This document shows positions 15,226 to 32,699 of a stretch of 64,000 nucleotides of DNA, piece after piece. The stretch is taken from the sequence record MW845759.1; one strand, written 5' to 3'. The position numbers and the translations under genes were made by a program. Under the pieces are notes generated by a model. It saw only the letters and a program-made list of their open reading frames with translations. It was not told the origin of the DNA and searched no databases. Positions within the stretch are counted from its first letter, which is position 1. Each line of letters opens with the position of its first letter.

Positions 15226-17013
15226 ATGGTAGAATTTCACGACGAAAAGAAAAACGCTAACACTTCCTCTGCAGACAACAACGCTGCAACGGGTAACGTG
15301 TCTGGCTTCTCTGTTGGCACCGCTAACGAGATGAACATGGCCTTTGAGTGGAGCTCTGTAAACTCGCAGGCTGGTAAGTTCGTAGAAGTGATTAAAGAAG
15401 CCGCCAAAGAAAACCAGTATCTGGCGAACTTCCAAGTCGGTACCGTTGATGCGGTAACTGGCGAATTCGGTTCTGCGGCATACGTCGCTGGTGAACTGCG
15501 CGGCATCCCGCTGTTCGGCATCGTGTTCTTCGAGAAGGGTCTGTCCCTGCGTCTGGTGGTAAACAACAATCAGGAAGATTACTACTCCATCGCTTCCCTG
15601 ATTAACAAAGACGTTATCGCCACTGTTGCGAAAACGCTGAAAACTACCCACAGCCTGTCTCAGGACCCGCGCTTCATCAGCATCAACACCATCCCGGATC
15701 TGGACCTGGCTCTGACTCGTGAGCGTGCTCTGTCCATCATGGGTCAGATGATGACCAGCATCTTCGGTCGTGCTTCCGGTATTCTGGGTAAACTCGTCAT
15801 CACCAAAAATGACAAGTTCATCGCTCAGGTCGGCGGCATCGGCGAAGGCGCAGTTCTGGATGTGAACGGTCACGCACAACGTGCTGACTTCGGTATCAAA
15901 CTGTCTCACGTTCCGCTGCAGCAGAACACTACCCCGACTCTGATGTCAGGTACCAATGCTCAGCAGTACCCGAACTGTGCGGCCGCTGGTTACGCTAACC
16001 TGCGCTACACCGGTCTGGTGAAGAACGCAGACGGTAGCATCAAAGACATGCGTCAGATTGCCCCAGAGCTGATTATCAGCCTGATGGACTCTTCTACGCT
16101 GACTGCGAACGCGCCGTTTGAGCGTCAGATTCTGATGCTGGCAGTGGCTGCGAAAACTGCAGCGATGGGTGGCTGGATGGACTTCATCAAGAACTCCCTG
16201 GACGGTAAGACGCGTAAAATCTCTGCACTGGCTCAGAACGTGAACTGGGGCAAAGACGTGTCTAACACCGACTGGAAAGCGATGGACAAATCCGTCGAAG
16301 CAGCTGAGCGCTTCCTGCGTGAGTTCTGCTACGAAACCGCGGGTCTGGTCGTTGAGCACCGTGCAGGTAACGGTATCGGCGGTCTGATTGGTCTGATTGC
16401 AGAAGTTGCACAGAACAAACAGCACGCGCTGGAAACTCTGCTGGCTCTGCTGGACAACATGTTCCCGGTTGTTGAAGGTAACAAGTTCTCCGACGGCCTG
16501 CGTATTGCGTTCGGTGGTCCGACTGTAACACTGTCTGCATCTCACATCGTCTCCGGCGTTGTACCGACCGTGGCAGGTGTGTACCGTGGTTCTAACGGCA
16601 TGCGTTCATACTCCGATATGGACCTGCTGCGTACTACCACTGCGCTGGGTGACGACCGTGCTGAAGTGCTGAAATACTTCCGTGCTCAGTCGTACAAACA
16701 TCGTAACATGCAGCCTAAGCAGCAGCGTATCTACCTGGCTCAGCTGGCTAACAGCCTGTTCTCTGGCAACGATCCGATTCCGACCGGTGAAGGTGTTCAG
16801 ATTTCCATCAACACCACCTTCGCGAAGTTCCTGTACGAAGCGGTTGATGCGTGTGGCCTGCTGCAGCTGACCGGTGTGAACGCAATGTCTGTTGCGGATT
16901 CCGTACCGTTCTACAACAACACTGGCGACCTGTTCGTAATGTCTGGTGTTGGTGGCGTGTCTACCAACAACGCGTTCGACTTCGCTCAGCAGTCTGGCTA
17001 TTTCAACATGTAA
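15226..17013 (+). CDS. chmA: Chimallin, major phage-nucleus shell protein
   Basis: 595 aa; strong high-expression codon bias; directly upstream of the NADFDGD-containing nvRNAP subunit as phiKZ gp54 is of gp55; flexible N- and C-terminal segments. Confidence 0.85.
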   Translation: MVEFHDEKKNANTSSADNNAATGNVSGFSVGTANEMNMAFEWSSVNSQAGKFVEVIKEAAKENQYLANFQVGTVDAVTGEFGSAAYVAGELRGIPLFGIVFFEKGLSLRLVVNNNQEDYYSIASLINKDVIATVAKTLKTTHSLSQDPRFISINTIPDLDLALTRERALSIMGQMMTSIFGRASGILGKLVITKNDKFIAQVGGIGEGAVLDVNGHAQRADFGIKLSHVPLQQNTTPTLMSGTNAQQYPNCAAAGYANLRYTGLVKNADGSIKDMRQIAPELIISLMDSSTLTANAPFERQILMLAVAAKTAAMGGWMDFIKNSLDGKTRKISALAQNVNWGKDVSNTDWKAMDKSVEAAERFLREFCYETAGLVVEHRAGNGIGGLIGLIAEVAQNKQHALETLLALLDNMFPVVEGNKFSDGLRIAFGGPTVTLSASHIVSGVVPTVAGVYRGSNGMRSYSDMDLLRTTTALGDDRAEVLKYFRAQSYKHRNMQPKQQRIYLAQLANSLFSGNDPIPTGEGVQISINTTFAKFLYEAVDACGLLQLTGVNAMSVADSVPFYNNTGDLFVMSGVGGVSTNNAFDFAQQSGYFNM

Positions 17014-22338: not shown

Positions 22339-23025
22339 ATGTCGTTTAACCACAAGTTTCTTAAAGACAAAACTCTTCTGCCGAAAACCAAACCAGACGC
22401 ACGCGGCCAGCAAAAATCCATGTCCATTGAGCCGAACATGTTCAATGGCGAGTGTGAAGGTCTGACCTTCAAATACTTCTTTGGTAAAGGCGAAGGCATT
22501 TACCCATCCATGAAGTACGCCACCCTGCGTGCTATTTGTGATGCGCTGGAAGATGCCCTGCGCAACAAAGAAGCGAGCAGCCTCGAGTTCGAAATCACCA
22601 ACAGTCAGAACAAACCGGCGGCCATGATTGTTGTCGGCCGTGGCGAAGATCTGATCCCGTTCATTAAACTGGGCGGCGATGTCAACGGACAAAAGAAAAT
22701 GGCCGGCTTCACCTGGTACGCAGACAAAGGCGTTCGCCTGTTGCGTAAAGGTCAGCCGGTTCCGGATCTGGAAATCCATGAGCGCATTGCGCGTACCTTC
22801 GTGAAAGAATTTAACGTCTTCCTCGAAGCGCTGCGTGATGTGTATAACCCACGTGACTGGAACGCCAACGGTGGCGGTCAGCAGTCTGGCCGTGGTCAGT
22901 ACGGCGGCGGTGGCCAAGGTGGTGGTCAACGTGGCGGCCAGTATCAGGGCGGTGGTCAGTCAGGCGGTCAGGGCGGCGGTGGCTCTATGGCATCGGCAAC
23001 CAACGAATTCGACGAAATGTTCTAA
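22339..23025 (+). CDS. chmC: ChmC-like nucleus-associated nucleic-acid-binding protein with a Gly/Gln-rich disordered tail (phiKZ gp67-like)
   Basis: Two genes upstream of the PicA-like gene and directly before the gp68-like gene; C-terminal GGGQ/RG repeats ending NEFDEMF. Confidence 0.65.
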   Translation: MSFNHKFLKDKTLLPKTKPDARGQQKSMSIEPNMFNGECEGLTFKYFFGKGEGIYPSMKYATLRAICDALEDALRNKEASSLEFEITNSQNKPAAMIVVGRGEDLIPFIKLGGDVNGQKKMAGFTWYADKGVRLLRKGQPVPDLEIHERIARTFVKEFNVFLEALRDVYNPRDWNANGGGQQSGRGQYGGGGQGGGQRGGQYQGGGQSGGQGGGGSMASATNEFDEMF

Positions 23026-23119: not shown

Positions 23120-24760
23120 GTGAATATTGAGAAGATTCGCGAAAGTGTAGTGATTAGCCACAATGGTGAAACCATTACTTTCAATAACGTGCCGCACATC
23201 AACCGGAAGAAGAACACAGTCAAGATTCGCATGGACGATGAAGGGGATTTCCTTTCACGTGACCAACTGCTGTTCCTCGAACTGAATCGTCTTTGGGGTA
23301 CTTTCTCGGATAAAGAGATTGCCGAAGTTTGGGAGATTTATCAGAACGTACAACTGCTGGTCACTGAGCCGGACGAAGTACGCTTTAATGTATTGCCTGA
23401 CATGCTGCGTCGTTTGGTAGAGATTCACTCTGTCGACCGCATCATTGCGTTGTACCCTCAGCATCAGGTGTGGATTCCGAAGAAACTCGAAAATAACTTC
23501 GACAACATTTCGCCGAACTACACCGAAGCCATGACGTATCTGGTCTCTGACTATTATAACCTCATGGTGTTTACGCTGGCACTGAAACCATTGATTCCGG
23601 TCTTCGCCGCAATCGGTGCGTATCCTCCTGTGAAAATGAACTCACAGTCTGCCCGTCGCAAAATCGTGACCTTAACCAACGATTGTTTCGAAATCCTGCT
23701 AACCTCTAAACTGGGGAACCAGCCAGCGATTCAGAAACTCCGCGACTCATTACCACACACCATCGTCAAGATTCAGAAAGAAGCGGGCGCGCAAAACTCG
23801 AATACGCCGTCCCTGACTCTGATTGCCGTTGTGGAAGGTTATGGGTTGGACGCGTTGGAAGAATACATTACCGCTTTCACGGTGGTGAACATTCTGGCAC
23901 TGCAACCGGTAGGCGCGGATTTCAAAGAAGGTGTGATGGATGAGAACTCCATCGTAAGCCGCATCTTCTATGGCATTCGTCCAGAAGTATTGAACGGCTT
24001 TGCTGATAAGATGTCCGCCCACAACGTAACGGAGAAACCGCATGCGTCCACCATGAAACTCAATGGCGAACGTGGCAAGACCTCAGTTATTGATACGGTG
24101 AATGCACGCTCCACTGCGCCGATTAAGGAAGCAGAACGTACCGGGTTTTATTTCACCGAGTACCGTAAGGCGCTGAAACGTATCGATGCGGATATCCCAC
24201 CGGCACGCTGTAAGCAACACATCGACGGGGTTGTCGAACACCACCCACGTCCGTTCTCGGAATTGCACGAATGGCTGGTTGCAGTAGTATTGCACCGGCA
24301 TGCACACCGTGGGACGTATAAAGATGTTGACATGCAAAGTTATATGCATGGCATGGGGATTGCGCAGGCTATCTGGGCAAGCTATGGGTTCCATTCGGCT
24401 GCAGCACTGCTAAGCTGCGCAGCGTTACCGGGTCGTGATGGTTTGGAATATCCGTTCCTGCCAATCGATGCGAGTATCAAAGAAAAGTCGGAAATATATT
24501 ATCCTCAAGCATACCGTGCCCATAAAGGTCAGGAAATCATCAGTCCACTGCGTGAATCCGTCATGCTGTTGATTCGTGATTACATCAACCCGTTTAGTTT
24601 TCATTTGAAGACCTCGCCCGAGGTCGCAGCGATACTTGGCGTAGAACCCGAAGTGAAGGGTTATATTCCGGGTAAGAACTTGCAGATGGAACTGGCTGAA
24701 ATGCTGCTTATCCAGGCCAGACAGAAGCACCGTGAAATGCATCCGTTGGCCGCTGAATAA
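23120..24760 (+). CDS. nvRNAP promoter-specificity subunit (phiKZ gp68-like)
   Basis: 546 aa all-helical character; GAGGAG SD with GTG start; synteny within the nucleus block. Confidence 0.7.
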   Translation: MNIEKIRESVVISHNGETITFNNVPHINRKKNTVKIRMDDEGDFLSRDQLLFLELNRLWGTFSDKEIAEVWEIYQNVQLLVTEPDEVRFNVLPDMLRRLVEIHSVDRIIALYPQHQVWIPKKLENNFDNISPNYTEAMTYLVSDYYNLMVFTLALKPLIPVFAAIGAYPPVKMNSQSARRKIVTLTNDCFEILLTSKLGNQPAIQKLRDSLPHTIVKIQKEAGAQNSNTPSLTLIAVVEGYGLDALEEYITAFTVVNILALQPVGADFKEGVMDENSIVSRIFYGIRPEVLNGFADKMSAHNVTEKPHASTMKLNGERGKTSVIDTVNARSTAPIKEAERTGFYFTEYRKALKRIDADIPPARCKQHIDGVVEHHPRPFSELHEWLVAVVLHRHAHRGTYKDVDMQSYMHGMGIAQAIWASYGFHSAAALLSCAALPGRDGLEYPFLPIDASIKEKSEIYYPQAYRAHKGQEIISPLRESVMLLIRDYINPFSFHLKTSPEVAAILGVEPEVKGYIPGKNLQMELAEMLLIQARQKHREMHPLAAE

Positions 24761-24799: not shown

Positions 24800-26521
24800 A
24801 TGAAACTGCTGCAACTTCAACTGTATCCGGTCTACGAAATCCCAGAACAGATTCGTCGCCGTATTGCGTTCAACGCCGGTACGGAAGATTTGACCAAGCT
24901 GAGCGATGTGATTGTTCAGAATGGTTCGAGCGCCACCAGTGCGTTTGACTACGGCGAAGCGATGGGGAAAATCGTGGGCTTTGACCCGCTGCCGGGTAGC
25001 TTTGAAACGCCTGTGCTGGATATCTCCGGCCAGAGCAATGTGGTCACCCCATTCCGTTTCGAGCAACGCAGCCGTATCTACAACTTCGTGGCCGTTGTGG
25101 TGGTTAACCCGATTAACGAAACTCGCTCACAAGAGATTCGTTATATCCTGACCGGTTACACCTCAGAAGCCGACCCAACGTTGGCGAGTCTGCTGCCAGA
25201 CGACATGGTGTTGTACATCAACGACATCTATGGCGTACGTCTGAGCTATAAGTACGACTCACTGGGTAACCGTTATGTTGACCCGAACTCGTTCCAGATG
25301 GTTGACAACTATGTGCTGTCGAACACGCTGGTTACGTCGCAGGGAACTGAATTAACGCTTGACCCGATTGCGCTGACTAAGGCAGCCAAGACGGTAAGCA
25401 ATCTGGATGTGAATGTGGGGGCAGGTGAAGAGCTGCAGTTCAACGTCACCTCCGATCAGGTTCTCGGCCCGTCACTGCAATCAGAAGCACAACTGCTGAC
25501 TGCACAACTGACCCGTCCTGAATCGTTCATCGGTGCGATGTCCACCGGGTATCTGAACTCGCTGCTGAATGAGCAAGAGTCCAACTCCCTGTCCGGCATC
25601 AATGCGTTCTTTGATAATGGCACGCTGTCACTGGAAGGTGAAATGCGTCGTCTGGGTGTGGTGAAGTCGTATAAGAACCACAACTTTGCCAACGCCCTGC
25701 GTACTGCGCTGTCCCGCCAGAACTTTGTGCAGGATGCGTACCGTCAGTCACAGGATGCCAAGTTCCGTTTAGGTGACCTGCGCTCCGTGCTGTTTAACCC
25801 GCAAGACCTGAACCGCATGTTGCAGGACTCACTGAGTACGGCAATGCGTAACATGTCTCTCGGCATCGACAAAACGGACAGCTGGACCAACATGCGCGGC
25901 ATCGGTACTGATGCATCACTGATTGCCTACGATGTGGGCATGCGTATGGGTCAGGTTATGGCGAAGAACCTGATTAACGGGATTCGTCTGACCTTTGATA
26001 ACCGCATGGCGAACTTTGATACGCAGCCGCAGTTGGCTGTGGTACCAGACTCCGCAGAGTCCGTGAGTGAAGGGGGTATCCCGGCGCTGATGGCTCGTAA
26101 CTTCATGCGTGAAATGATGCAGACCTTTATTCAGGCTACGCGTCACAACGCTGTTCGCTGCAAGATGGTGGTTATCTCTCGTCTGGGTCAGGTGACCCGT
26201 GTGGAAATCACACCAGACGGGGAGGCAGTCACCGAGTATTACACCTTCGCGTCGTTCATGTCATCCCGTATGCATATCGGCCTGACGTACGACAACACGT
26301 ACAACAACACCGTGGCTAAGAACACCAGTACGTTGTTCTCCACAATCCAGCACGGCTTTGATGAGTATACTCGTCGCGATTCCTCGAACGCGGTGATGGT
26401 CTCAATGTCGGCTATGTCGTCACCGTCTAACGGGTTTACGATTCCGGACACTCCGGTTTCCCAGCCCGCTTCTAGCGGGGACTTCTCGTTCGGCAATGAC
26501 GTTACCGGATTCAAACTTTAA
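24800..26521 (+). CDS. picA: PicA/Imp1-like phage-nucleus protein import factor (phiKZ gp69-like)
   Basis: 573 aa directly after the gp68-like gene; conserved core-block order. Confidence 0.7.
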   Translation: MKLLQLQLYPVYEIPEQIRRRIAFNAGTEDLTKLSDVIVQNGSSATSAFDYGEAMGKIVGFDPLPGSFETPVLDISGQSNVVTPFRFEQRSRIYNFVAVVVVNPINETRSQEIRYILTGYTSEADPTLASLLPDDMVLYINDIYGVRLSYKYDSLGNRYVDPNSFQMVDNYVLSNTLVTSQGTELTLDPIALTKAAKTVSNLDVNVGAGEELQFNVTSDQVLGPSLQSEAQLLTAQLTRPESFIGAMSTGYLNSLLNEQESNSLSGINAFFDNGTLSLEGEMRRLGVVKSYKNHNFANALRTALSRQNFVQDAYRQSQDAKFRLGDLRSVLFNPQDLNRMLQDSLSTAMRNMSLGIDKTDSWTNMRGIGTDASLIAYDVGMRMGQVMAKNLINGIRLTFDNRMANFDTQPQLAVVPDSAESVSEGGIPALMARNFMREMMQTFIQATRHNAVRCKMVVISRLGQVTRVEITPDGEAVTEYYTFASFMSSRMHIGLTYDNTYNNTVAKNTSTLFSTIQHGFDEYTRRDSSNAVMVSMSAMSSPSNGFTIPDTPVSQPASSGDFSFGNDVTGFKL

Positions 26522-26532
26522 AGGATATCTCG

Positions 26533-27951
26533 ATGAGCAAGCTGAACATTATTGATTACTACCGCGCCCAGTTGGACTCGCTGGGTTTTGGCGATAAAGA
26601 TGCGTTCTTGTATCACAAGGACGAAGGGCAACTGACTGACCCGGTGACATTTAAGTACGCCGGGGAAACACGTCAGATGGTGCTGCCAACGTACCAGATG
26701 ATTAAAGCGGGCTTAGTGGATGAGGTGGGCAACGAATGCCACGCCTTCCACCCGCTGTGTGAATCTGTCATGACCGGCGAATCAGGGACGATTCGCTTCC
26801 TGAAACAAGCCATCAAAAATCAGCTGTACGTGAAAGGTATCTCCTTTATTACCTACATGCTGAAAGCGCTGGCCGAAGGGAAGTCTTCTCGCTCTGCCAC
26901 CTTTAAGAAGTTTGTGGCGGCAATGACCGAAGGCGTGAAAGATCCGAAGATTGATGATAAGCTGCTGCGTAGCTGGACGAACGTGGCAACGTACATCAAA
27001 GACCGGATGGATAAGAAAACGCGCCTGATGCTCAGTATTCAGCCCGACCAGAAAATCGACGGGGTGAAATATCTGCGTGCAGCGAACTATAAGCATGCAT
27101 TCAGTGAAGAGCAGGATGACGGTACGGCAACGTACTTCGGTGTGCGGTTGGAACGTAAGCAGGATAAGGTGATTATTCACAACCTGCTGACCACCGTGTT
27201 CGGTTGGTATCCAGAAGAGATGGGGTCGAATGACCAGCGTGCGTACTACGGGTCATTGATTCGTGGTTGGGCAGAGTTCGTGTTGAAGTTCAATGCCCAT
27301 GCGAAAGGTCTGAAGGACATCGTGCCGGAATACGAACTGCTGAACGATGCGTGGTTGCCAGATCTGGATAACCTCAGTGAATACGACGGTAAGATTCAAA
27401 CCTTACCGTACAACACCGGTAGCCGTGACTCCGAAGTGGAAACCACCAAGCGTGATTTCCGGGTTGGTGGGCAGCAGACTTATAATGAGCCAGCTGCGCA
27501 AACAGTTACAGAAATTCGTCGGACTGAAAACGGTCTGATTGACCCACTGTCACTGTTGTCACCGACCACTGCCCCGCAGTCGGGTAACGTGTTCATTAAT
27601 GGTACCCGTCAGGTTGACCTGTCGCAGTACACACCGCTCGAACAGAAACTGATTAAAGAAGGCCGTACGCATGCACAGCCCTCTAAAATCGCCGCTATCC
27701 CATTGTCACAAGCGCTGGGCGGTGGCCATGTCTCTCGCCAGCAGGGTAGTGCAGCCGACTTCTTCGGTAGCAACAGCGGTAACGTATTCGCCACCACAAC
27801 CAGTAACAATAACCCGTTCGCTGGTAACGTAGGCAATCCGTTTACCTCATCCGCAAACAGCAATCCGTTTGCAGGCGGTAATACCAACAACAATCCATTC
27901 GGCGGTTCTACTGGCGGTAACGACGGTAGTCTGTTCAGCGGCATGTTGTAA
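26533..27951 (+). CDS. Conserved nucleus-block protein (phiKZ gp70-like) with an NPF-repeat C-terminal tail
   Basis: 472 aa; HPLCES motif near the N-terminus; four NPF repeats in a low-complexity tail. Confidence 0.75.
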   Translation: MSKLNIIDYYRAQLDSLGFGDKDAFLYHKDEGQLTDPVTFKYAGETRQMVLPTYQMIKAGLVDEVGNECHAFHPLCESVMTGESGTIRFLKQAIKNQLYVKGISFITYMLKALAEGKSSRSATFKKFVAAMTEGVKDPKIDDKLLRSWTNVATYIKDRMDKKTRLMLSIQPDQKIDGVKYLRAANYKHAFSEEQDDGTATYFGVRLERKQDKVIIHNLLTTVFGWYPEEMGSNDQRAYYGSLIRGWAEFVLKFNAHAKGLKDIVPEYELLNDAWLPDLDNLSEYDGKIQTLPYNTGSRDSEVETTKRDFRVGGQQTYNEPAAQTVTEIRRTENGLIDPLSLLSPTTAPQSGNVFINGTRQVDLSQYTPLEQKLIKEGRTHAQPSKIAAIPLSQALGGGHVSRQQGSAADFFGSNSGNVFATTTSNNNPFAGNVGNPFTSSANSNPFAGGNTNNNPFGGSTGGNDGSLFSGML

Positions 27952-27953
27952 GC

Positions 27954-27991
27954 AAAAAATAAATAAGGGGCTAACCACCCCTTATTTTTTT
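27954..27991. terminator. Bidirectional terminator
   Basis: AAATAAGGGG-CTAACCA-CCCCTTATTT between convergent genes. Confidence 0.85.
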
Positions 27992-28310
27992 AAACAACAG
28001 CGGAGTCCAGAATGGATGCCACGACGCCGATGTCCGGAATCAGTAAGGTTTCCATGTCGGGGGTGAATTCCATGGGGTTACGGATGTTGTTTAAAAGCAT
28101 CGTTGGAAAGATAAGTTCGCTGGGAATATCGACTAAGCTGCAGTACGCATAGAAGCTATGCATCTCCGGATACGAATAACGCGGGTCTACAGCCCTTGCT
28201 TTCGTGCTCGGATGATTACGCAGATAGTCAAGGTGGTCAATTATGAGTTGGCGTTCAATGGTACTAAGCGCTGGTATCGCCGCCTCGTATGTCACAAAGT
28301 TATCAAGCAC
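27990..28310 (-). CDS. Small LysM-like baseplate protein (P2 gpX / T4 gp53-like)
   Basis: AAGGAGG SD with GTG start; LLNNIRNPMEF...LLIPD pattern. Confidence 0.55.
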   Translation of the reverse strand: MLDNFVTYEAAIPALSTIERQLIIDHLDYLRNHPSTKARAVDPRYSYPEMHSFYAYCSLVDIPSELIFPTMLLNNIRNPMEFTPDMETLLIPDIGVVASILDSAVV

Positions 28311-28377: not shown

Positions 28378-30591
28378 ATGCAATCCTATACCGAGTTAAA
28401 GAGCACCCACGCAGACCGTGAGGCAGCTGTCGATATGATTTCAGGCTCGCGTGCAGCAATGCAAGGCGGTCATATGAAATCGGCAGTGCCGGTGGATAAC
28501 CCACATCACACCCTGCATTTTACGGGTGCGGACACTGAGTACGAGAAGTATGTGTTTAACCACGTCGTAGAAGACCAAGGTGAAGTCTACCAGTACAATT
28601 ACAACGGTCGTTTTCTACGCGCCATCTTTACCCGTACCGCCTGTCGTAGTGACGCAACACCGCTGCAGCGCGCAATCTTTTTCCGTCGGTCGGCATTAGG
28701 CGATGGCGGGCGTCCCGTTATCGACCTGATTGAAACCACCGGTTATACCGACCACGACCACGTCTTTACCTCACCACAAAAGGAAACGCCGAAACTCCAG
28801 CGCCTTTTGCGTGGAGAGACCAACATTCTGGACTTAGGGGATAACCTCACCGAACTGAACTGTCAGAAAGATGGGGAGTTCGCAGATGGGGTGAATCTGT
28901 TAACGGTACCGGTATCGCATCCTGAGAACATTGAAGATGCGTACTTTATCTCCAAGACCGCAGCGGCGATGATGCACGGTTACGGCTATCGCCGCATTAC
29001 CGTGGTGTTGCGTGATGGAGACACCCTGTTGGATATCATGGGCTACCGCACCGCCGATGGGCGTTGGGTGCCGAAATACTTCCCAGAGATTGGTGAAGCG
29101 ATCCCTAACAGTGGGCTGGTTATCGCCAAACGTCTGTACGATCCGTTGTACGCCGCTATCGACATGTCATCCGGTGAACTGCAGCACCCGTCACCGTTCT
29201 TTGACCGCTGTGAATACGTGGATGCAGACCCGGAGTACGTGGCGAACCCAACCGAAGAAAACGGGTCTCGCGTTATTGACATTAAAGTGTGGCGTAACGA
29301 TGCCATGGTGAAGAACGGTGTCAATAACATTCGCTGTACTGAAGAGAACAAGCGTCTGCTTGATGAATACGCACTGGGCCTGAAAGATTACTACACGTCC
29401 ATCCTGCGCTTCTACTTCTCAGTAAAAGAAGATGTGATTTGGTCACCGAAAGCCAGCTTGCTGATTCGTACAGCGCTAGCATCGGACTGCCATGAAGTTT
29501 TCCATGAGTTCCAGCGTGATATCCGTGATGAACTGACGAAGTCTGTCCGTCGTCATGAGAACAAGCAGGACTACGTGGACAGCAACATGAAGAAACTTCA
29601 GGAAGCGCCGGAGCGCAACCTGAAGGAAGCAGTCACCAACTACACCATCGAAATCGTGGTGCGTTACCCTATTCCGGTTACCGTGTCGTCGAAGATTACC
29701 GACCGTTCAGGTACTAAGGGTATCGTGGGCGCGGTAATGGATGATGAGCTGATGCCGCTGGATGAGTTCGGTCAGCGGATTCACTGTCTGCGTAGTGCGA
29801 ACGCCGTTATGCGTCGTTCAACCTATTCGGCGCCGTACCACATCTTCTGGTCTGCCGCTTCTGAGCAGTTAAAGATGCGCATGAAACCAATGCTGGAGGA
29901 AAACCGGGTAGACGATGCGTGGGCTGAGCTGCTCGAGTATCTGAACTGCTATAATGAGAAATGGTCACGTGCCATTGCTCTGACGCACCAGACAACCGAG
30001 CAACGGATTAAACTGTTTGAACAGATTTATCAAACCAGTATCCGTATCCACCTGCCACATGAGCTGCCGAAATCCGGGATAGATATATGTGATAGCCTTG
30101 GTAGATTCACACCGAAGCGCACCAAACTGTTAATGACCGACTATAACGGGAAGAAGCAGTGGACGAAGAACACGTTTTACGTGGGCTACGTAGAAACCTT
30201 ACGTCTGGATAAAACCGGCCGTGAGTTCTCCTCAATGTCATCCATGTACACAAACTACTTGGGTGCGATTGATGCCAGTGGTGCCGGTGCCGGGAACTAC
30301 CCGATGAAGTATAAGGCCATTAAGTTCGGCGGGGAGTCTGAACGTCGACTGCTCGAAGGCTACCGTAAAGGTACCTTTGATGAGATTCACAACCGTGCAA
30401 ACTGTCCGGATGTACATCGCGCCGTGGTTCGTGGGCTGTATGAATCCCACACGCCGACTTCACCGGGGTATCTGATTGACCGTAAGCAGTTCCCGATGGG
30501 TTATTCGCAGATTGATAAACTGGTGGACAACATTCACCGCTGCGAAGGTTTCCGTTTAGTTAAACCACTTCGCGAGGATGTAGCTGCATGA
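28378..30591 (+). CDS. nvRNAP beta-like C-terminal subunit (phiKZ gp71-73-like), uninterrupted
   Basis: EDAYFIS; SSKITDRSGTKGIV (compare beta KxxxRHGNKG); KFGGESE (compare RFGEME). Confidence 0.92.
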   Translation: MQSYTELKSTHADREAAVDMISGSRAAMQGGHMKSAVPVDNPHHTLHFTGADTEYEKYVFNHVVEDQGEVYQYNYNGRFLRAIFTRTACRSDATPLQRAIFFRRSALGDGGRPVIDLIETTGYTDHDHVFTSPQKETPKLQRLLRGETNILDLGDNLTELNCQKDGEFADGVNLLTVPVSHPENIEDAYFISKTAAAMMHGYGYRRITVVLRDGDTLLDIMGYRTADGRWVPKYFPEIGEAIPNSGLVIAKRLYDPLYAAIDMSSGELQHPSPFFDRCEYVDADPEYVANPTEENGSRVIDIKVWRNDAMVKNGVNNIRCTEENKRLLDEYALGLKDYYTSILRFYFSVKEDVIWSPKASLLIRTALASDCHEVFHEFQRDIRDELTKSVRRHENKQDYVDSNMKKLQEAPERNLKEAVTNYTIEIVVRYPIPVTVSSKITDRSGTKGIVGAVMDDELMPLDEFGQRIHCLRSANAVMRRSTYSAPYHIFWSAASEQLKMRMKPMLEENRVDDAWAELLEYLNCYNEKWSRAIALTHQTTEQRIKLFEQIYQTSIRIHLPHELPKSGIDICDSLGRFTPKRTKLLMTDYNGKKQWTKNTFYVGYVETLRLDKTGREFSSMSSMYTNYLGAIDASGAGAGNYPMKYKAIKFGGESERRLLEGYRKGTFDEIHNRANCPDVHRAVVRGLYESHTPTSPGYLIDRKQFPMGYSQIDKLVDNIHRCEGFRLVKPLREDVAA

Positions 30592-32699
30592 AAAAGGGCT
30601 TAGCCGTACATGTGCGGGACCTGCGTAACCTGACCAAGGACCAAGTCTGGAGACTGAACGGACGTTACGATGTAACGTTCGATGACGGCGTGACCCTCCC
30701 CATGGGGGGTCGCCACATTAAACTAAGCTGGCCGTACTGGGCGTTCTCTCGCCTGTACGATTTTGTACCTACCCCTAGCACCCTCACGTACCAACGTGAA
30801 GAGGTGTCCACGGACAAGAAGCATCTGGAACTGCTGGGGGTAATGTTCCGTTTGGCCAAACATCATGGCATCCCTATTGCCGATATCCGTTATGTGTTAT
30901 CCGAACACGGGTACACGGATGCGTACAACGGTTCTGTTGAGAACCTGATTGCGTACATCTCAACGGTTGACGTGGATACCTTCTTAGACATCTGGCGTCA
31001 CCCCCGTATGGATGTGGTGCGCGATTTGGCCCGTCGTTATCCGGAAGGGTACGATGAAGAAGGTAATGACATGGTGGAAGCGGCGTATCAGGAAATCGAG
31101 ATGATTTTCGATGATCCAGCGATGCGCTACAACATGGCAGTAATGTCGGTTCGTGACCACACCGTCAAAGGCGATACCATCCTGCAGGCATTTGTTCGCG
31201 GGAAGCTGTCAGAGATTGACTCGCGTGTGTTCAGTAATCAGGTCTGGTCCGGTCTCTTTACCGGTCTGGACGATGCTGGTCGTGTGAAGGAATCGTGCTC
31301 GACCTCGCGTTCGCATCTGTACAACACAGATAACATCGCTGATGCTGAATATACCAGCCGTAAATTCCAGCTGGTGTCCAACGTCCTCATGCGCTATACG
31401 CCGGGGGACTGTGGCACCCATCACCACCACCGTAAGACCTTTACGGATACCCGCTCACAAGAGCTGGTATTCAATGCGATGGCGGGGATGTACTTTAAAC
31501 TGGAAGGACATCAAGAAGGGCCGTGGATACGCTTTAACAAAGGCGAGTTCAAGCAGTACGTGAACAAGCCACTGGTCTTCCGCTCTGCAATGACCTGTAA
31601 ACTGCTGGCGAAGCAGTCTATCTGTTCTATTTGCATGGGCGATATGGTCGACAACATGTCTGACGACACTGCACCGGGTCACTTGGCTCTGACTTCCATT
31701 TCGGAGAAGGGGTCACAGGGGATTCTGTCCACCAAGCACTTGGACTTCCTGCGCAAAGTGTTGCAGCTAGTGTTTACCTCGACAATGGAGCGTTTCATTA
31801 CGCTGTTCAAGCACAGTACCGTGAAAGCGGTGCGTTTGCAGAACAAACCGTTGCAGGGTAAATGGGATGACTATGAACTGACAATTCAGGATAAGATCCA
31901 CTCCGAGCTTATTCAGATTGCCTACCATAGTTCGTTGTCTGAACTGGATGAAACGGCCTTACCTGACATCAATGCGTTGACCTTTGTACGCGTCGATAAA
32001 GAAGGGAACGTCCTCGATGAGGAGTCCATCAACGTGCGAATGGGGGTGTGCGGGAACTTCTCCCCAGACTTCCTGAAGCACTATCTGCGCAACAAAGACA
32101 AGCTGCGTATCGTTGGCAAATCTGTACATATCCCTCTCGCCGGTTGGAACGTGAACCGCCCTCTGTTAGTTTATACAAATCGCTCAGAAAGTATGGCGGA
32201 GTTTGTATCAGCAATGGAAGCGAAGATTCGTTCCGCGTCGGTTGATGGTGAAGACCGTTTAGTGAAGTCGAAGAAGATGGAAGGCAACCAGCGTTCTGCT
32301 TTCTTCAAGAACAAAAACGGTGTGGTAAAATCCATCTCTTTGGTGGACCAGCGTGGTGCCACAGAACAGCAATGTACCGATGCCATGTTTGACATGTATC
32401 AGTTCATTGACCGTAAACTGAAAGGTATCCCGATGGCGCACATCGGTATTACGTTAGCCGTCTCCCGTGTCGAATCCCCAACCAACTCCTTCCCGGCAGT
32501 TGGCTTCGATGCCGAAGACTACAATACGCAATCCGGTAAGCGTTTCTTAGACCACAACACCATCATGGGTCGTCGCTCTGCTGCCCCAATGCTTTTCTAT
32601 GAGGGTCAACAGGACTACCTCGACAACATCGGCTTTTGGACTGACAGAGTTCGCCCGGCGTCGTTATACGACGGGGCGTTCTTTGCAGTTAAGAAATAA
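30588..32699 (+). CDS. nvRNAP beta'-like C-terminal subunit (phiKZ gp74-like)
   Basis: GDCGT; RSAMTC...CSICMG Zn site; ISEKGSQGILSTKH trigger-loop equivalent. Confidence 0.9.
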   Translation: MKKGLAVHVRDLRNLTKDQVWRLNGRYDVTFDDGVTLPMGGRHIKLSWPYWAFSRLYDFVPTPSTLTYQREEVSTDKKHLELLGVMFRLAKHHGIPIADIRYVLSEHGYTDAYNGSVENLIAYISTVDVDTFLDIWRHPRMDVVRDLARRYPEGYDEEGNDMVEAAYQEIEMIFDDPAMRYNMAVMSVRDHTVKGDTILQAFVRGKLSEIDSRVFSNQVWSGLFTGLDDAGRVKESCSTSRSHLYNTDNIADAEYTSRKFQLVSNVLMRYTPGDCGTHHHHRKTFTDTRSQELVFNAMAGMYFKLEGHQEGPWIRFNKGEFKQYVNKPLVFRSAMTCKLLAKQSICSICMGDMVDNMSDDTAPGHLALTSISEKGSQGILSTKHLDFLRKVLQLVFTSTMERFITLFKHSTVKAVRLQNKPLQGKWDDYELTIQDKIHSELIQIAYHSSLSELDETALPDINALTFVRVDKEGNVLDEESINVRMGVCGNFSPDFLKHYLRNKDKLRIVGKSVHIPLAGWNVNRPLLVYTNRSESMAEFVSAMEAKIRSASVDGEDRLVKSKKMEGNQRSAFFKNKNGVVKSISLVDQRGATEQQCTDAMFDMYQFIDRKLKGIPMAHIGITLAVSRVESPTNSFPAVGFDAEDYNTQSGKRFLDHNTIMGRRSAAPMLFYEGQQDYLDNIGFWTDRVRPASLYDGAFFAVKK

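Follow-up and report, generated by a model that had tools for sequence, protein, structure and literature searches.

The window analysed here is the first 64 kb (64,000 nt) of the genome of Erwinia phage pEa_SNUABM_38 (genus Derbicusvirus; record MW845759.1), a nucleus-forming jumbo phage, to which it is 100% identical with unchanged coordinates. At positions 26533..27951 of its plus strand lies a coding sequence (CDS; stop codon 27949-27951) for a 472-aa protein of the gp70/gp64 family, in which a disordered linker joins a folded N-terminal domain to a low-complexity tail. The tail is a disordered, multivalent sticker tail under selection, and in its chemistry it co-evolves with two other nucleus-linked proteins, a JADA-like and a PicA-like protein. 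The gp70-like protein matched PHROG 3520 (E 4.9e-130), SPN3US gp32 (45% identity, E 2e-98) and, by direct sequence match, PhiPA3 gp064 (E 2e-7); similarity to PhiKZ gp70 is stated in the PhiPA3 and 201phi2-1 records in the annotation of their own copies. It is the orthologue of PhiKZ gp70 and PhiPA3 gp64, which are nuclear-shell-associated, and the family (PHROG 3520, Chimalliviridae) also includes 201phi2-1 gp126 and SPN3US gp32. A profile search returned 1613 representatives at 50% clustering (1300 at E <= 1e-10), so this is a large chimallivirus family. Rhc (RNase H-clamp) was considered as an identity for the protein and dropped on the outline of the corresponding paper. In published work, PhiPA3 gp64 localised to the nuclear shell and was detected by proximity labelling and in ChmB pull-downs (PMC10643120, PMC11077065), PhiPA3 gp63 (PicA) likewise localised to the shell (PMC10643120), and PhiKZ gp70 was listed among nuclear proteins (bioRxiv 10.1101/2024.03.27.586873).

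The tail proper comprises the last 64 residues (aa 409-472; 27757..27948, plus strand), in which eight Phe stickers are set in uncharged N/G/S/T sequence (N14 G12 S9 F8 T6 A4 P4 D2 V2 L2 M1; two of 64 residues charged). The original prediction had described four NPF motifs plus NVF, DFF and SLF in charge-poor linkers, and this is exactly what aa 409-472 contain. The order is DFF, NVF, four NPF, SLF, and the gaps between successive Phe are 1, 8, 10, 8, 9, 10 and 12 residues. The first NPF (aa 427-429; 27811..27819) is invariant in five homologues; the second (aa 435-437; 27835..27843), third (aa 444-446; 27862..27870) and fourth (aa 454-456; 27892..27900) were read from the sequence and the homologue alignment, all on the plus strand. 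All four Pro of the tail fall within N-P-F, and only two FG dipeptides are present among the eight Phe. The tail ends in ..NDGSLFSGML, contains only two Asp and lacks a Ser/Asp/Glu-rich electronegative cluster. An antisense open reading frame (ORF) of 111 aa with L-P-P-x-N-G-L-L repeats (27609..27944, minus strand) overlies the tail; it mirrors the NPF repeat in translation and is almost certainly not a gene.

We evaluated the regularity of the tail by shuffling it with its own composition kept. None of 200,000 shuffles contained four NPF (the maximum was three, seen 12 times), 26 of 200,000 contained four PF, and Phe spacing as even as that of the real tail was found in 2.3%. Tandem Repeats Finder, run on 27600-28000, detected no DNA-level tandem repeat over the tail, and the repeat is thus maintained at the peptide level. 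Among five homologues of 69-99% identity, sticker columns were invariant in 15 of 16 cases and spacer columns in 11 of 56 (Fisher p 9e-8), which indicates selection on the stickers but not on the spacers. AlphaFold2 assigned a predicted local distance difference test score (pLDDT) below 50 to residues 411-472. The low pLDDT, the shuffles and the sticker conservation together bear out the earlier view of this tail as disordered and multivalent.

The remainder of the protein was characterised with the same AlphaFold2 model, built on a 29-sequence alignment. The folded N-terminal domain (aa 1-295; 26533..27417, plus strand) is mixed alpha/beta and was modelled at pLDDT 85-97. Foldseek against the PDB yielded nothing better than E 0.5 for this domain, and the best match in a VIA wide search was a designed helical protein (Z 5.7), hence no credible structural relative. 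The disordered linker (aa 296-408; 27418..27756, plus strand; pLDDT 36-70) includes predicted helices at 368-375 and 391-394. Two of its motifs, TPLEQKL.. (about aa 368-375) and ..SLxxALGG (about aa 389-397), are short, helical and conserved across the SPN3US group in the alignment.

The gene is part of a block in the order gp68-like, PicA/Imp1-like, gp70-like, small reverse gene and beta subunit of the non-virion RNA polymerase (nvRNAP), and that order is kept in SPN3US, PhiPA3, 201phi2-1, RAY, Eowyn, RP12, RTH11 and pVa-21. The PicA/Imp1-like protein (573 aa; 24800..26521, plus strand) was assigned by PHROG 3141 and synteny. To our knowledge, PicA/Imp1 is the only established import factor. 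The adjacency to a PicA-like import factor that had been proposed from the sequence was confirmed by PHROGs 3520 and 3141 and by synteny across chimalliviruses. Upstream on the plus strand are a gene in the position of PhiKZ gp68 / PhiPA3 gp62, the fifth nvRNAP subunit (23120..24760; PHROG 3209; assigned to that position by synteny only), a ChmC/Imp6-like protein of 228 aa with a G/Q/Y-rich tail and an acidic end (22339..23025; PHROG 3284), and a ChmA (chimallin)-like shell protein of 595 aa (15226..17013; PHROG 8316, and PHROG 4795 'nuclear shell protein' at E 1.6e-7). Imp6 is PhiKZ gp67 (bioRxiv 10.1101/2024.03.27.586873). The identity of the ChmA-like protein is based on PHROGs and position, because phmmer found no match to it among PDB sequences. 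Searches of Pfam gave no match for the gp70-, PicA-, gp68-, ChmA-, ChmC- or JADA-like proteins.

Directly downstream in the block that holds the gp70-like gene are the two nvRNAP large-subunit genes (28378..32699, plus strand), one beta-like (28378-30591) and one beta'-like (30588-32699), identified by PHROG 3295 (RNA polymerase beta subunit; E 7e-250) and SPN3US annotation. A hairpin with an 11-pair stem and T-runs on both strands (27961..27987) separates the gp70-like gene from the convergent small gene (27990-28310, minus strand; PHROG 3455) and resembles a bidirectional intrinsic terminator. SPN3US, 201phi2-1, RAY, Eowyn, RP12, RTH11 and pVa-21 all keep the small reverse gene at the same spot.

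The diversity of the tail was assessed over the last 70 residues of 183 usable family representatives. A low-complexity tail was present in all 183, with a mean entropy of 3.24 bits versus 3.91 bits in the folded part. NPF tails occur in the Derbicus/CR5/Phobos clade and also on two uncultivated branches, P0048 (seven NPF) and P0049 (four); S/M-F or L-F tails were found in further lineages, and true FGG repeats in the tails of P0022 and P0025. The S/G-L-F class belongs to uncultivated relatives and not to Wellington-type phages. SPN3US-like phages carry LLGG or GLGGGG tails. Most Pseudomonas-type phages possess Q/P/Y/M/G tails, many of them Y/G/Q/P-rich, with an M/Q/P tail in PhiKZ and PhiPA3 and a Q/N/Y/P tail in 201phi2-1. 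Highly charged tails with R/D/S/Y mixed-charge repeats were observed in 39 of the 183 representatives. A lone A-N-P-F occurs near the C-terminus in PhiPA3 and 201phi2-1, and L-P-F in SPN3US. On a FastTree phylogeny of the folded domain, the tail class switches at least 30 times, and NPF requires at least three changes. Since the tail class switches so often, conservation lies not in NPF itself but in the presence of a sticker-and-spacer tail with interchangeable chemistry. The original prediction had turned to homologue C-termini for such repeats: most homologues lack NPF repeats, but every one of them has a low-complexity sticker tail. As to the extreme ends, small residues lead up to a single final hydrophobic or aromatic one in most gp70-family proteins (..G-G-I, ..N-S-V, ..G-F-x-W). 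The closing motif of R/D-type tails is S-[LI]-x-D-[LMF]-[LI], resembling the S-L-x-x-A-L-G-G that precedes the tail in pEa_SNUABM_38.

We searched for further NPF-containing proteins by scanning ORFs of at least 80 aa in the whole 224-kb record. Only two had at least two NPF: the gp70-like protein and a 515-aa protein at record positions 72991-74538, outside the window (PHROG 8185), which has four NPF in N/G/S spacers (aa 113-157). Among annotated genes, polar low-complexity of the N/G/S type was limited to the gp70-like tail, the linker of this second protein and the ChmC-like tail; inside the window, the only polar low-complexity segments were the ChmC-like and gp70-like tails. The gene of the second protein lies directly after, and co-directional with, a PHROG 2943 'polymerase' gene, whose relatives in PhiPA3, 201phi2-1 and PhiKZ are gp123 homologues (nvRNAP subunit), and before a virion structural gene. 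Its predicted structure comprises a helical N-domain (1-108, pLDDT ~85), a linker (109-224, ~30) and a C-domain (225-516, ~90). The top Foldseek match of the C-domain was PDB 9rp3 (probability 1.00, E 4.5e-4), which was also the top match in VIA-align (Z 10.4, root-mean-square deviation 4.3, 228 residues aligned, model 221-516); this Z exceeds that of unrelated helical bundles by only about 1.4, making fold support moderate.

PDB 9rp3 is JADA, gp316 of phage Pa36 and an orthologue of PhiKZ gp124. JADA is an essential, early and abundant protein, predicted to be DNA-binding and transcription-related, with two domains joined by a long disordered linker; its gene is always directly downstream of an nvRNAP subunit gene, and the protein, an activator of Avs5, is seen as foci at the vesicles of early infection (PMC12931631). 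Fold, architecture and synteny thus point, with moderate confidence, to the protein at record 72991-74538 being the JADA / PhiKZ gp124 orthologue, and we refer to it as JADA-like.

Three observations were made in passing at this and other record loci. The PhiPA3 JADA/gp124 orthologue (record about 125917-128023) is annotated as 261 aa (gp140) with a reverse CDS, gp141, over the remainder, and the plus strand of the same locus has a second open frame of 519 codons that overlaps the end of the first; judging by these frames, the gene looks frameshifted or mis-annotated in the record. In pEa_SNUABM_38, the virion structural protein beside the JADA-like gene (record 74934-77720, minus strand) carries, close to its C-terminus, an acidic repeat rich in D/N/G/L (D-D-x-A-G-x-D-D-D-L-N type). 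A stretch of ~860 bp at record 136524-137383 has no annotated CDS and contains low-complexity ORFs with P-E-Q-P repeats (plus strand) and Cys/Gly/Ser-rich sequence (minus strand); either a repeat region or a gene missed in annotation may lie there.

We then compared the gp70-like tail with the JADA-like disordered region of the same phage, using 17 SPN3US-group genomes together with PhiKZ, PhiPA3, 201phi2-1, RAY, Eowyn, RP12, RTH11, JM-2012 and pVa-21. The two regions carry the same or closely similar repeats: NPF in both for Derbicus, CR5 and Phobos; SLLGG in the tail and LLGGG in the JADA-like region for Wellington-like phages; RLGGLGG and LRLGGLGG, respectively, for ChrisDB and Caitlin; GLGGGG in both for phiEaH2-like phages; and FGG in both for two uncultivated clades. 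Outside these groups, both regions are of an M-Y-P-Q-Q type in RAY, M/G/Q/P in PhiKZ and PhiPA3, and G-W-G in RTH11. For Vibrio phage pVa-21, whose tail is R/D/S, we predicted beforehand that the JADA-like region would match; its JADA-like linker is R/D/S-rich, and a 12-mer is common to both proteins. Among viral contigs, no close relative of an R/D-type protein turned up.

The match was quantified with an objective rule, in which the lowest-entropy 60-mer of each protein was taken for 17 clade representatives. The correlation of composition between tail and JADA-like region was 0.65 within a phage and 0.36 between phages, a difference reached in 5 of 200,000 permutations. For shared 4-mers in the eight SPN3US-group clades, the figure was 5 of 40,320 permutations. 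At the nucleotide level, the peptides common to both proteins show synonymous differences (9 of 36 nt in pVa-21, 4 of 39 nt in RAY), and recent gene conversion is therefore not the cause. In pEa_SNUABM_38, the longest exact DNA match between the tail and the JADA-like region is at most 9 nt, and NPF is encoded by different codons. The JADA-like protein of RAY (gp4) has its low-complexity region at the extreme N-terminus and not in an interdomain linker, and a 13-residue peptide is still shared with the gp70-like tail; position within the protein is therefore not what is conserved. Our literature search found no description of this co-variation, although a published account could still exist.

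The tails of the other nucleus-block proteins were compared in the same way. The PicA-like protein of pEa_SNUABM_38 has a polar tail in its last ~35 residues (nt ~26417-26518, plus strand), with GF/SF/GF stickers that were defined by tail comparison across clades. PicA-like C-tails are of GF/SF type in the Derbicus clade, GLGG, SLLD or GLGGG in L-type clades, SFGSFG in FGG clades and R/D/S in pVa-21. Their co-variation with gp70-like tails over 12 clades was matched by none of 200,000 permutations, and that with JADA-like regions by 452 of 200,000. The shared chemistry of the PicA-like tail, together with the position of PhiPA3 gp64 at the shell (PMC10643120), substantiates the earlier placement of the gp70-like protein in a nucleus block. 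The ChmC-like tail does not change in chemistry from clade to clade (G/N/Q with G-R-G-G-Y and an acidic aromatic end) and showed no co-variation (r 0.62 within the same phage versus 0.65 across phages, p about 0.74), which indicates that the effect is not a genome-wide low-complexity bias. ChmA-like termini have a few x-Phe stickers, in N/S/T/G context, and their co-variation is weak (e.g., S-F-G-G and A-F-G-G in an FGG clade); ChmA is not a firm member of the set. In every clade examined, the ChmC-like protein ends in [DE]-F-[DE]-[DE]-hydrophobic-hydrophobic after a G/N/Q/Y stretch, and from its sequence this acidic-aromatic C-terminus could be a separate docking peptide.

Taken together, these findings suggest a lineage-specific cohesion code rather than a proven nuclear-pore-like gate. 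The reading that we favour, with modest confidence, is that the gp70-like tail is one copy of such a code, common to several nucleus-linked proteins of the same phage. The carriers of the code would be the gp70/gp64-like C-tail, the JADA/gp124-like linker with its four NPF and the F-type C-tail of the PicA/Imp1-like protein, with a faint echo in the ChmA termini. Eight Phe-centred stickers, 8-12 residues apart in uncharged N/G/S/T spacers, would provide many weak contacts. Like-with-like contacts between the matched regions would bring the proteins into the same assembly; alternatively, the matched regions would contact one co-evolving partner. We infer both that the matched regions physically attract each other and that such an assembly would be located at or in the phage nucleus, as shell-associated PicA puncta and/or an nvRNAP-linked hub.

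Several results count against this cohesion code. By the 60-mer rule, the match is weak in RP12, JM-2012, RTH11 and the two FGG clades, where a neighbouring Q/P or Ala-rich segment was chosen instead. Several G/L-type dialects are hard to separate by composition alone. The phages are related rather than independent and were reduced to clade representatives by our own choice. At the sequence level, tblastn with the JADA-like protein matched SPN3US-group phages only and no Pseudomonas-phage JADA, and hhalign of the SPN3US-group JADA-like profile against 201phi2-1 gp204 gave a probability of 0.9%, with only a short Y-x-x-H-E-L aligned. PhiKZ gp70 and Imp1 (gp69), co-expressed in E. coli, did not co-purify (bioRxiv 10.1101/2024.03.27.586873). 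Reported localisations also differ, with PhiPA3 gp64 at the shell, PhiKZ gp70 nuclear and JADA in foci at early-infection vesicles.

Rather than attracting each other, the stickers could be short linear motifs through which all matched regions dock on one co-evolving folded receptor, such as the body of PicA/Imp1, nvRNAP, ChmA or a host protein. That NPF is a defined tripeptide, strictly conserved including its Pro, fits such docking, as do the lone A-N-P-F of PhiPA3 and 201phi2-1 and the L-P-F of SPN3US, the location of both the gp70-like and JADA-like genes beside nvRNAP subunit genes, and an AlphaFold screen in the literature that ties PicA to other nuclear factors. However, the dialects span NPF, GLGGGG, Q/P/Y/M and R/D/S, and with at least 30 class changes a single pocket would have needed remodelling again and again; the analysis brought up no candidate receptor, and the failure of Imp1 and gp70 to co-purify in E. 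coli counts here too. We prefer like-with-like cohesion because dialects of such diversity, switching so often, would be hard for one pocket to follow, and because the ChmC tail next door is a proven example of a tail that forms condensates and determines localisation: the N/G-rich tail of PhiPA3 ChmC drives condensation and is needed for shell localisation (PMC11077065). Docking on a folded receptor is thus unlikely, if still worth serious consideration. Neutral drift of an appendage without any specific function, its composition following a genome-wide mutational or slippage bias or homogenised by gene conversion, would account for fast evolution of low-complexity regions, frequent changes of tail class and poorly conserved spacers. 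It is already disfavoured, and we give it hardly any credence, given that sticker columns are nearly invariant, a tail is kept in every representative, the switch is not mirrored by the ChmC-like tail of the same genomes, and the shared peptides differ at synonymous sites without any DNA-level repeat.

Two other alternatives assign the tail a role in transport. The original prediction had proposed a docking or selectivity element akin to FG-nucleoporins; in its explicit form, the tails would make up a selective phase like that of FG-nucleoporins (or of the PEX13 YG domain), located at or within a pore of the shell, with PicA bringing protein cargo across it or mRNA leaving by it. The part of the proposal that stands is the disorder and the uncharged polar spacers, as in FG domains. 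PhiPA3 gp64 and gp63 (PicA) at the shell (PMC10643120), the shared chemistry of the PicA-like and gp70-like tails, true FGG repeats in gp70-like, PicA-like and JADA-like proteins of some lineages, and the many Y/G/Q/P-rich Pseudomonas-type tails are also in line with it. On the other side, the tail has 64 aa and eight Phe, compared with FG domains of hundreds of residues; its motif is not FG; the R/D tails of 39 representatives are highly charged; JADA foci are at early-infection vesicles (PMC12931631); PhiKZ gp70 is listed as nuclear, not as a pore protein, and did not bind Imp1, and no pore is known for the phage nucleus (bioRxiv 10.1101/2024.03.27.586873). Our literature search gave no paper tying the phage nucleus to FG repeats. 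An FG-nucleoporin-like barrier would be the most interesting outcome if true, but it is not our default, owing to the short length, the R/D lineages, nuclear PhiKZ gp70 and the negative Imp1 pull-down; we judge it quite improbable. The low-complexity region could also be an import ticket, by which gp70-like and JADA-like cargo is captured through a match to PicA's own tail. Nuclear PhiKZ gp70 (bioRxiv 10.1101/2024.03.27.586873), the predicted DNA-binding, transcription-related function of JADA (PMC12931631) and the co-variation of the PicA-like tail with both proteins would suit this. Yet other nuclear cargos lack such tails (the genome scan yielded only these proteins), genetics place cargo recognition on folded Imp1 surfaces (bioRxiv 10.1101/2024.03.27.586873), and PhiPA3 gp64 stays at the shell (PMC10643120), which leaves the ticket very improbable.

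The preferred reading, a cohesion code matched within each phage, bears on how proteins and mRNA cross the phage-nucleus shell. It gives the hypothesis that gp70, JADA and PicA are held together by multivalent like-with-like contacts. The lineages form a natural series in which the same cohesive role is seemingly filled by NPF, FG, LLGG, Q/P/Y/M or R/D, and such a series informs which low-complexity features confer specificity. The result ties transcription-associated genes (both beside nvRNAP subunits) to the import machinery, and this gene placement hints at a link to middle and late transcription. Both gp70/gp64 and JADA/gp124 are conserved, and JADA is essential and an immune trigger; as JADA is sensed by Avs5, its disordered partner network may matter for immune evasion. 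A more speculative extension, which we consider rather unlikely, is that the sticker code sets up, at the nuclear shell, a selective phase private to the phage, pore- or PEX13-like, that would admit only proteins of its own dialect, with rapid dialect switching excluding co-infecting relatives or host sensors such as Avs5.

Finally, we compared the tail with known systems. EH domains are eukaryotic, and the NPF motifs that they bind (Eps15, EHD proteins) resemble the tail in having multiple Asn-Pro-Phe in a disordered region; they differ in that the phage motif is replaceable by unrelated stickers in homologues. The EH domain (PF12763) had no match at E <= 1 in a six-frame search of a 99%-identical Derbicus genome, with the host genome outside the search. 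The proposed analogy to EH-domain ligands was therefore dropped, given this result and the many sticker types that are interchangeable with NPF in the family. Within the gp70/gp64 family, the pEa_SNUABM_38 protein shares homology, the position between PicA/Imp1 and nvRNAP beta, and the build of a ~300-aa folded domain plus disordered tail, whereas tail chemistry differs by member (NPF versus M/Q/P versus Q/N/Y/P). The JADA-like partner shares with JADA (Pa36 gp316 / PhiKZ gp124) the C-domain fold, the build and the post-nvRNAP position, and is smaller (515 versus ~720 aa); the published work on JADA is silent on linker composition and on any match to gp70/PicA tails (PMC12931631).

ChmC (PhiPA3 gp61 / PhiKZ gp67 = Imp6) is encoded in the same gene block and is likewise a shell-associated protein with an uncharged Asn/Gly-rich tail. 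With N14 and G12 among its 64 residues, the gp70-like tail corresponds to the ChmC type of Asn/Gly-rich uncharged C-terminal stretch (~40 residues in ChmC). The ChmC tail differs from the gp70-like one in lacking Phe stickers, in having an acidic cluster behind it and in its chemistry, which stays the same from clade to clade; ChmC also contains a Whirly RNA-binding domain, whereas the folded gp70-like domain matches no known fold. FG-nucleoporins and PEX13 YG domains share with the tail evenly spaced aromatic stickers in uncharged polar disordered spacers, and they too are tied to the boundary of a DNA-containing or import-competent compartment. Compared with FG-nucleoporins, the tail has no known pore scaffold or transport receptor, is roughly ten times shorter and uses NPF rather than FG, GLFG or FxFG, and its relatives in other lineages use Leu, Met or R/D.

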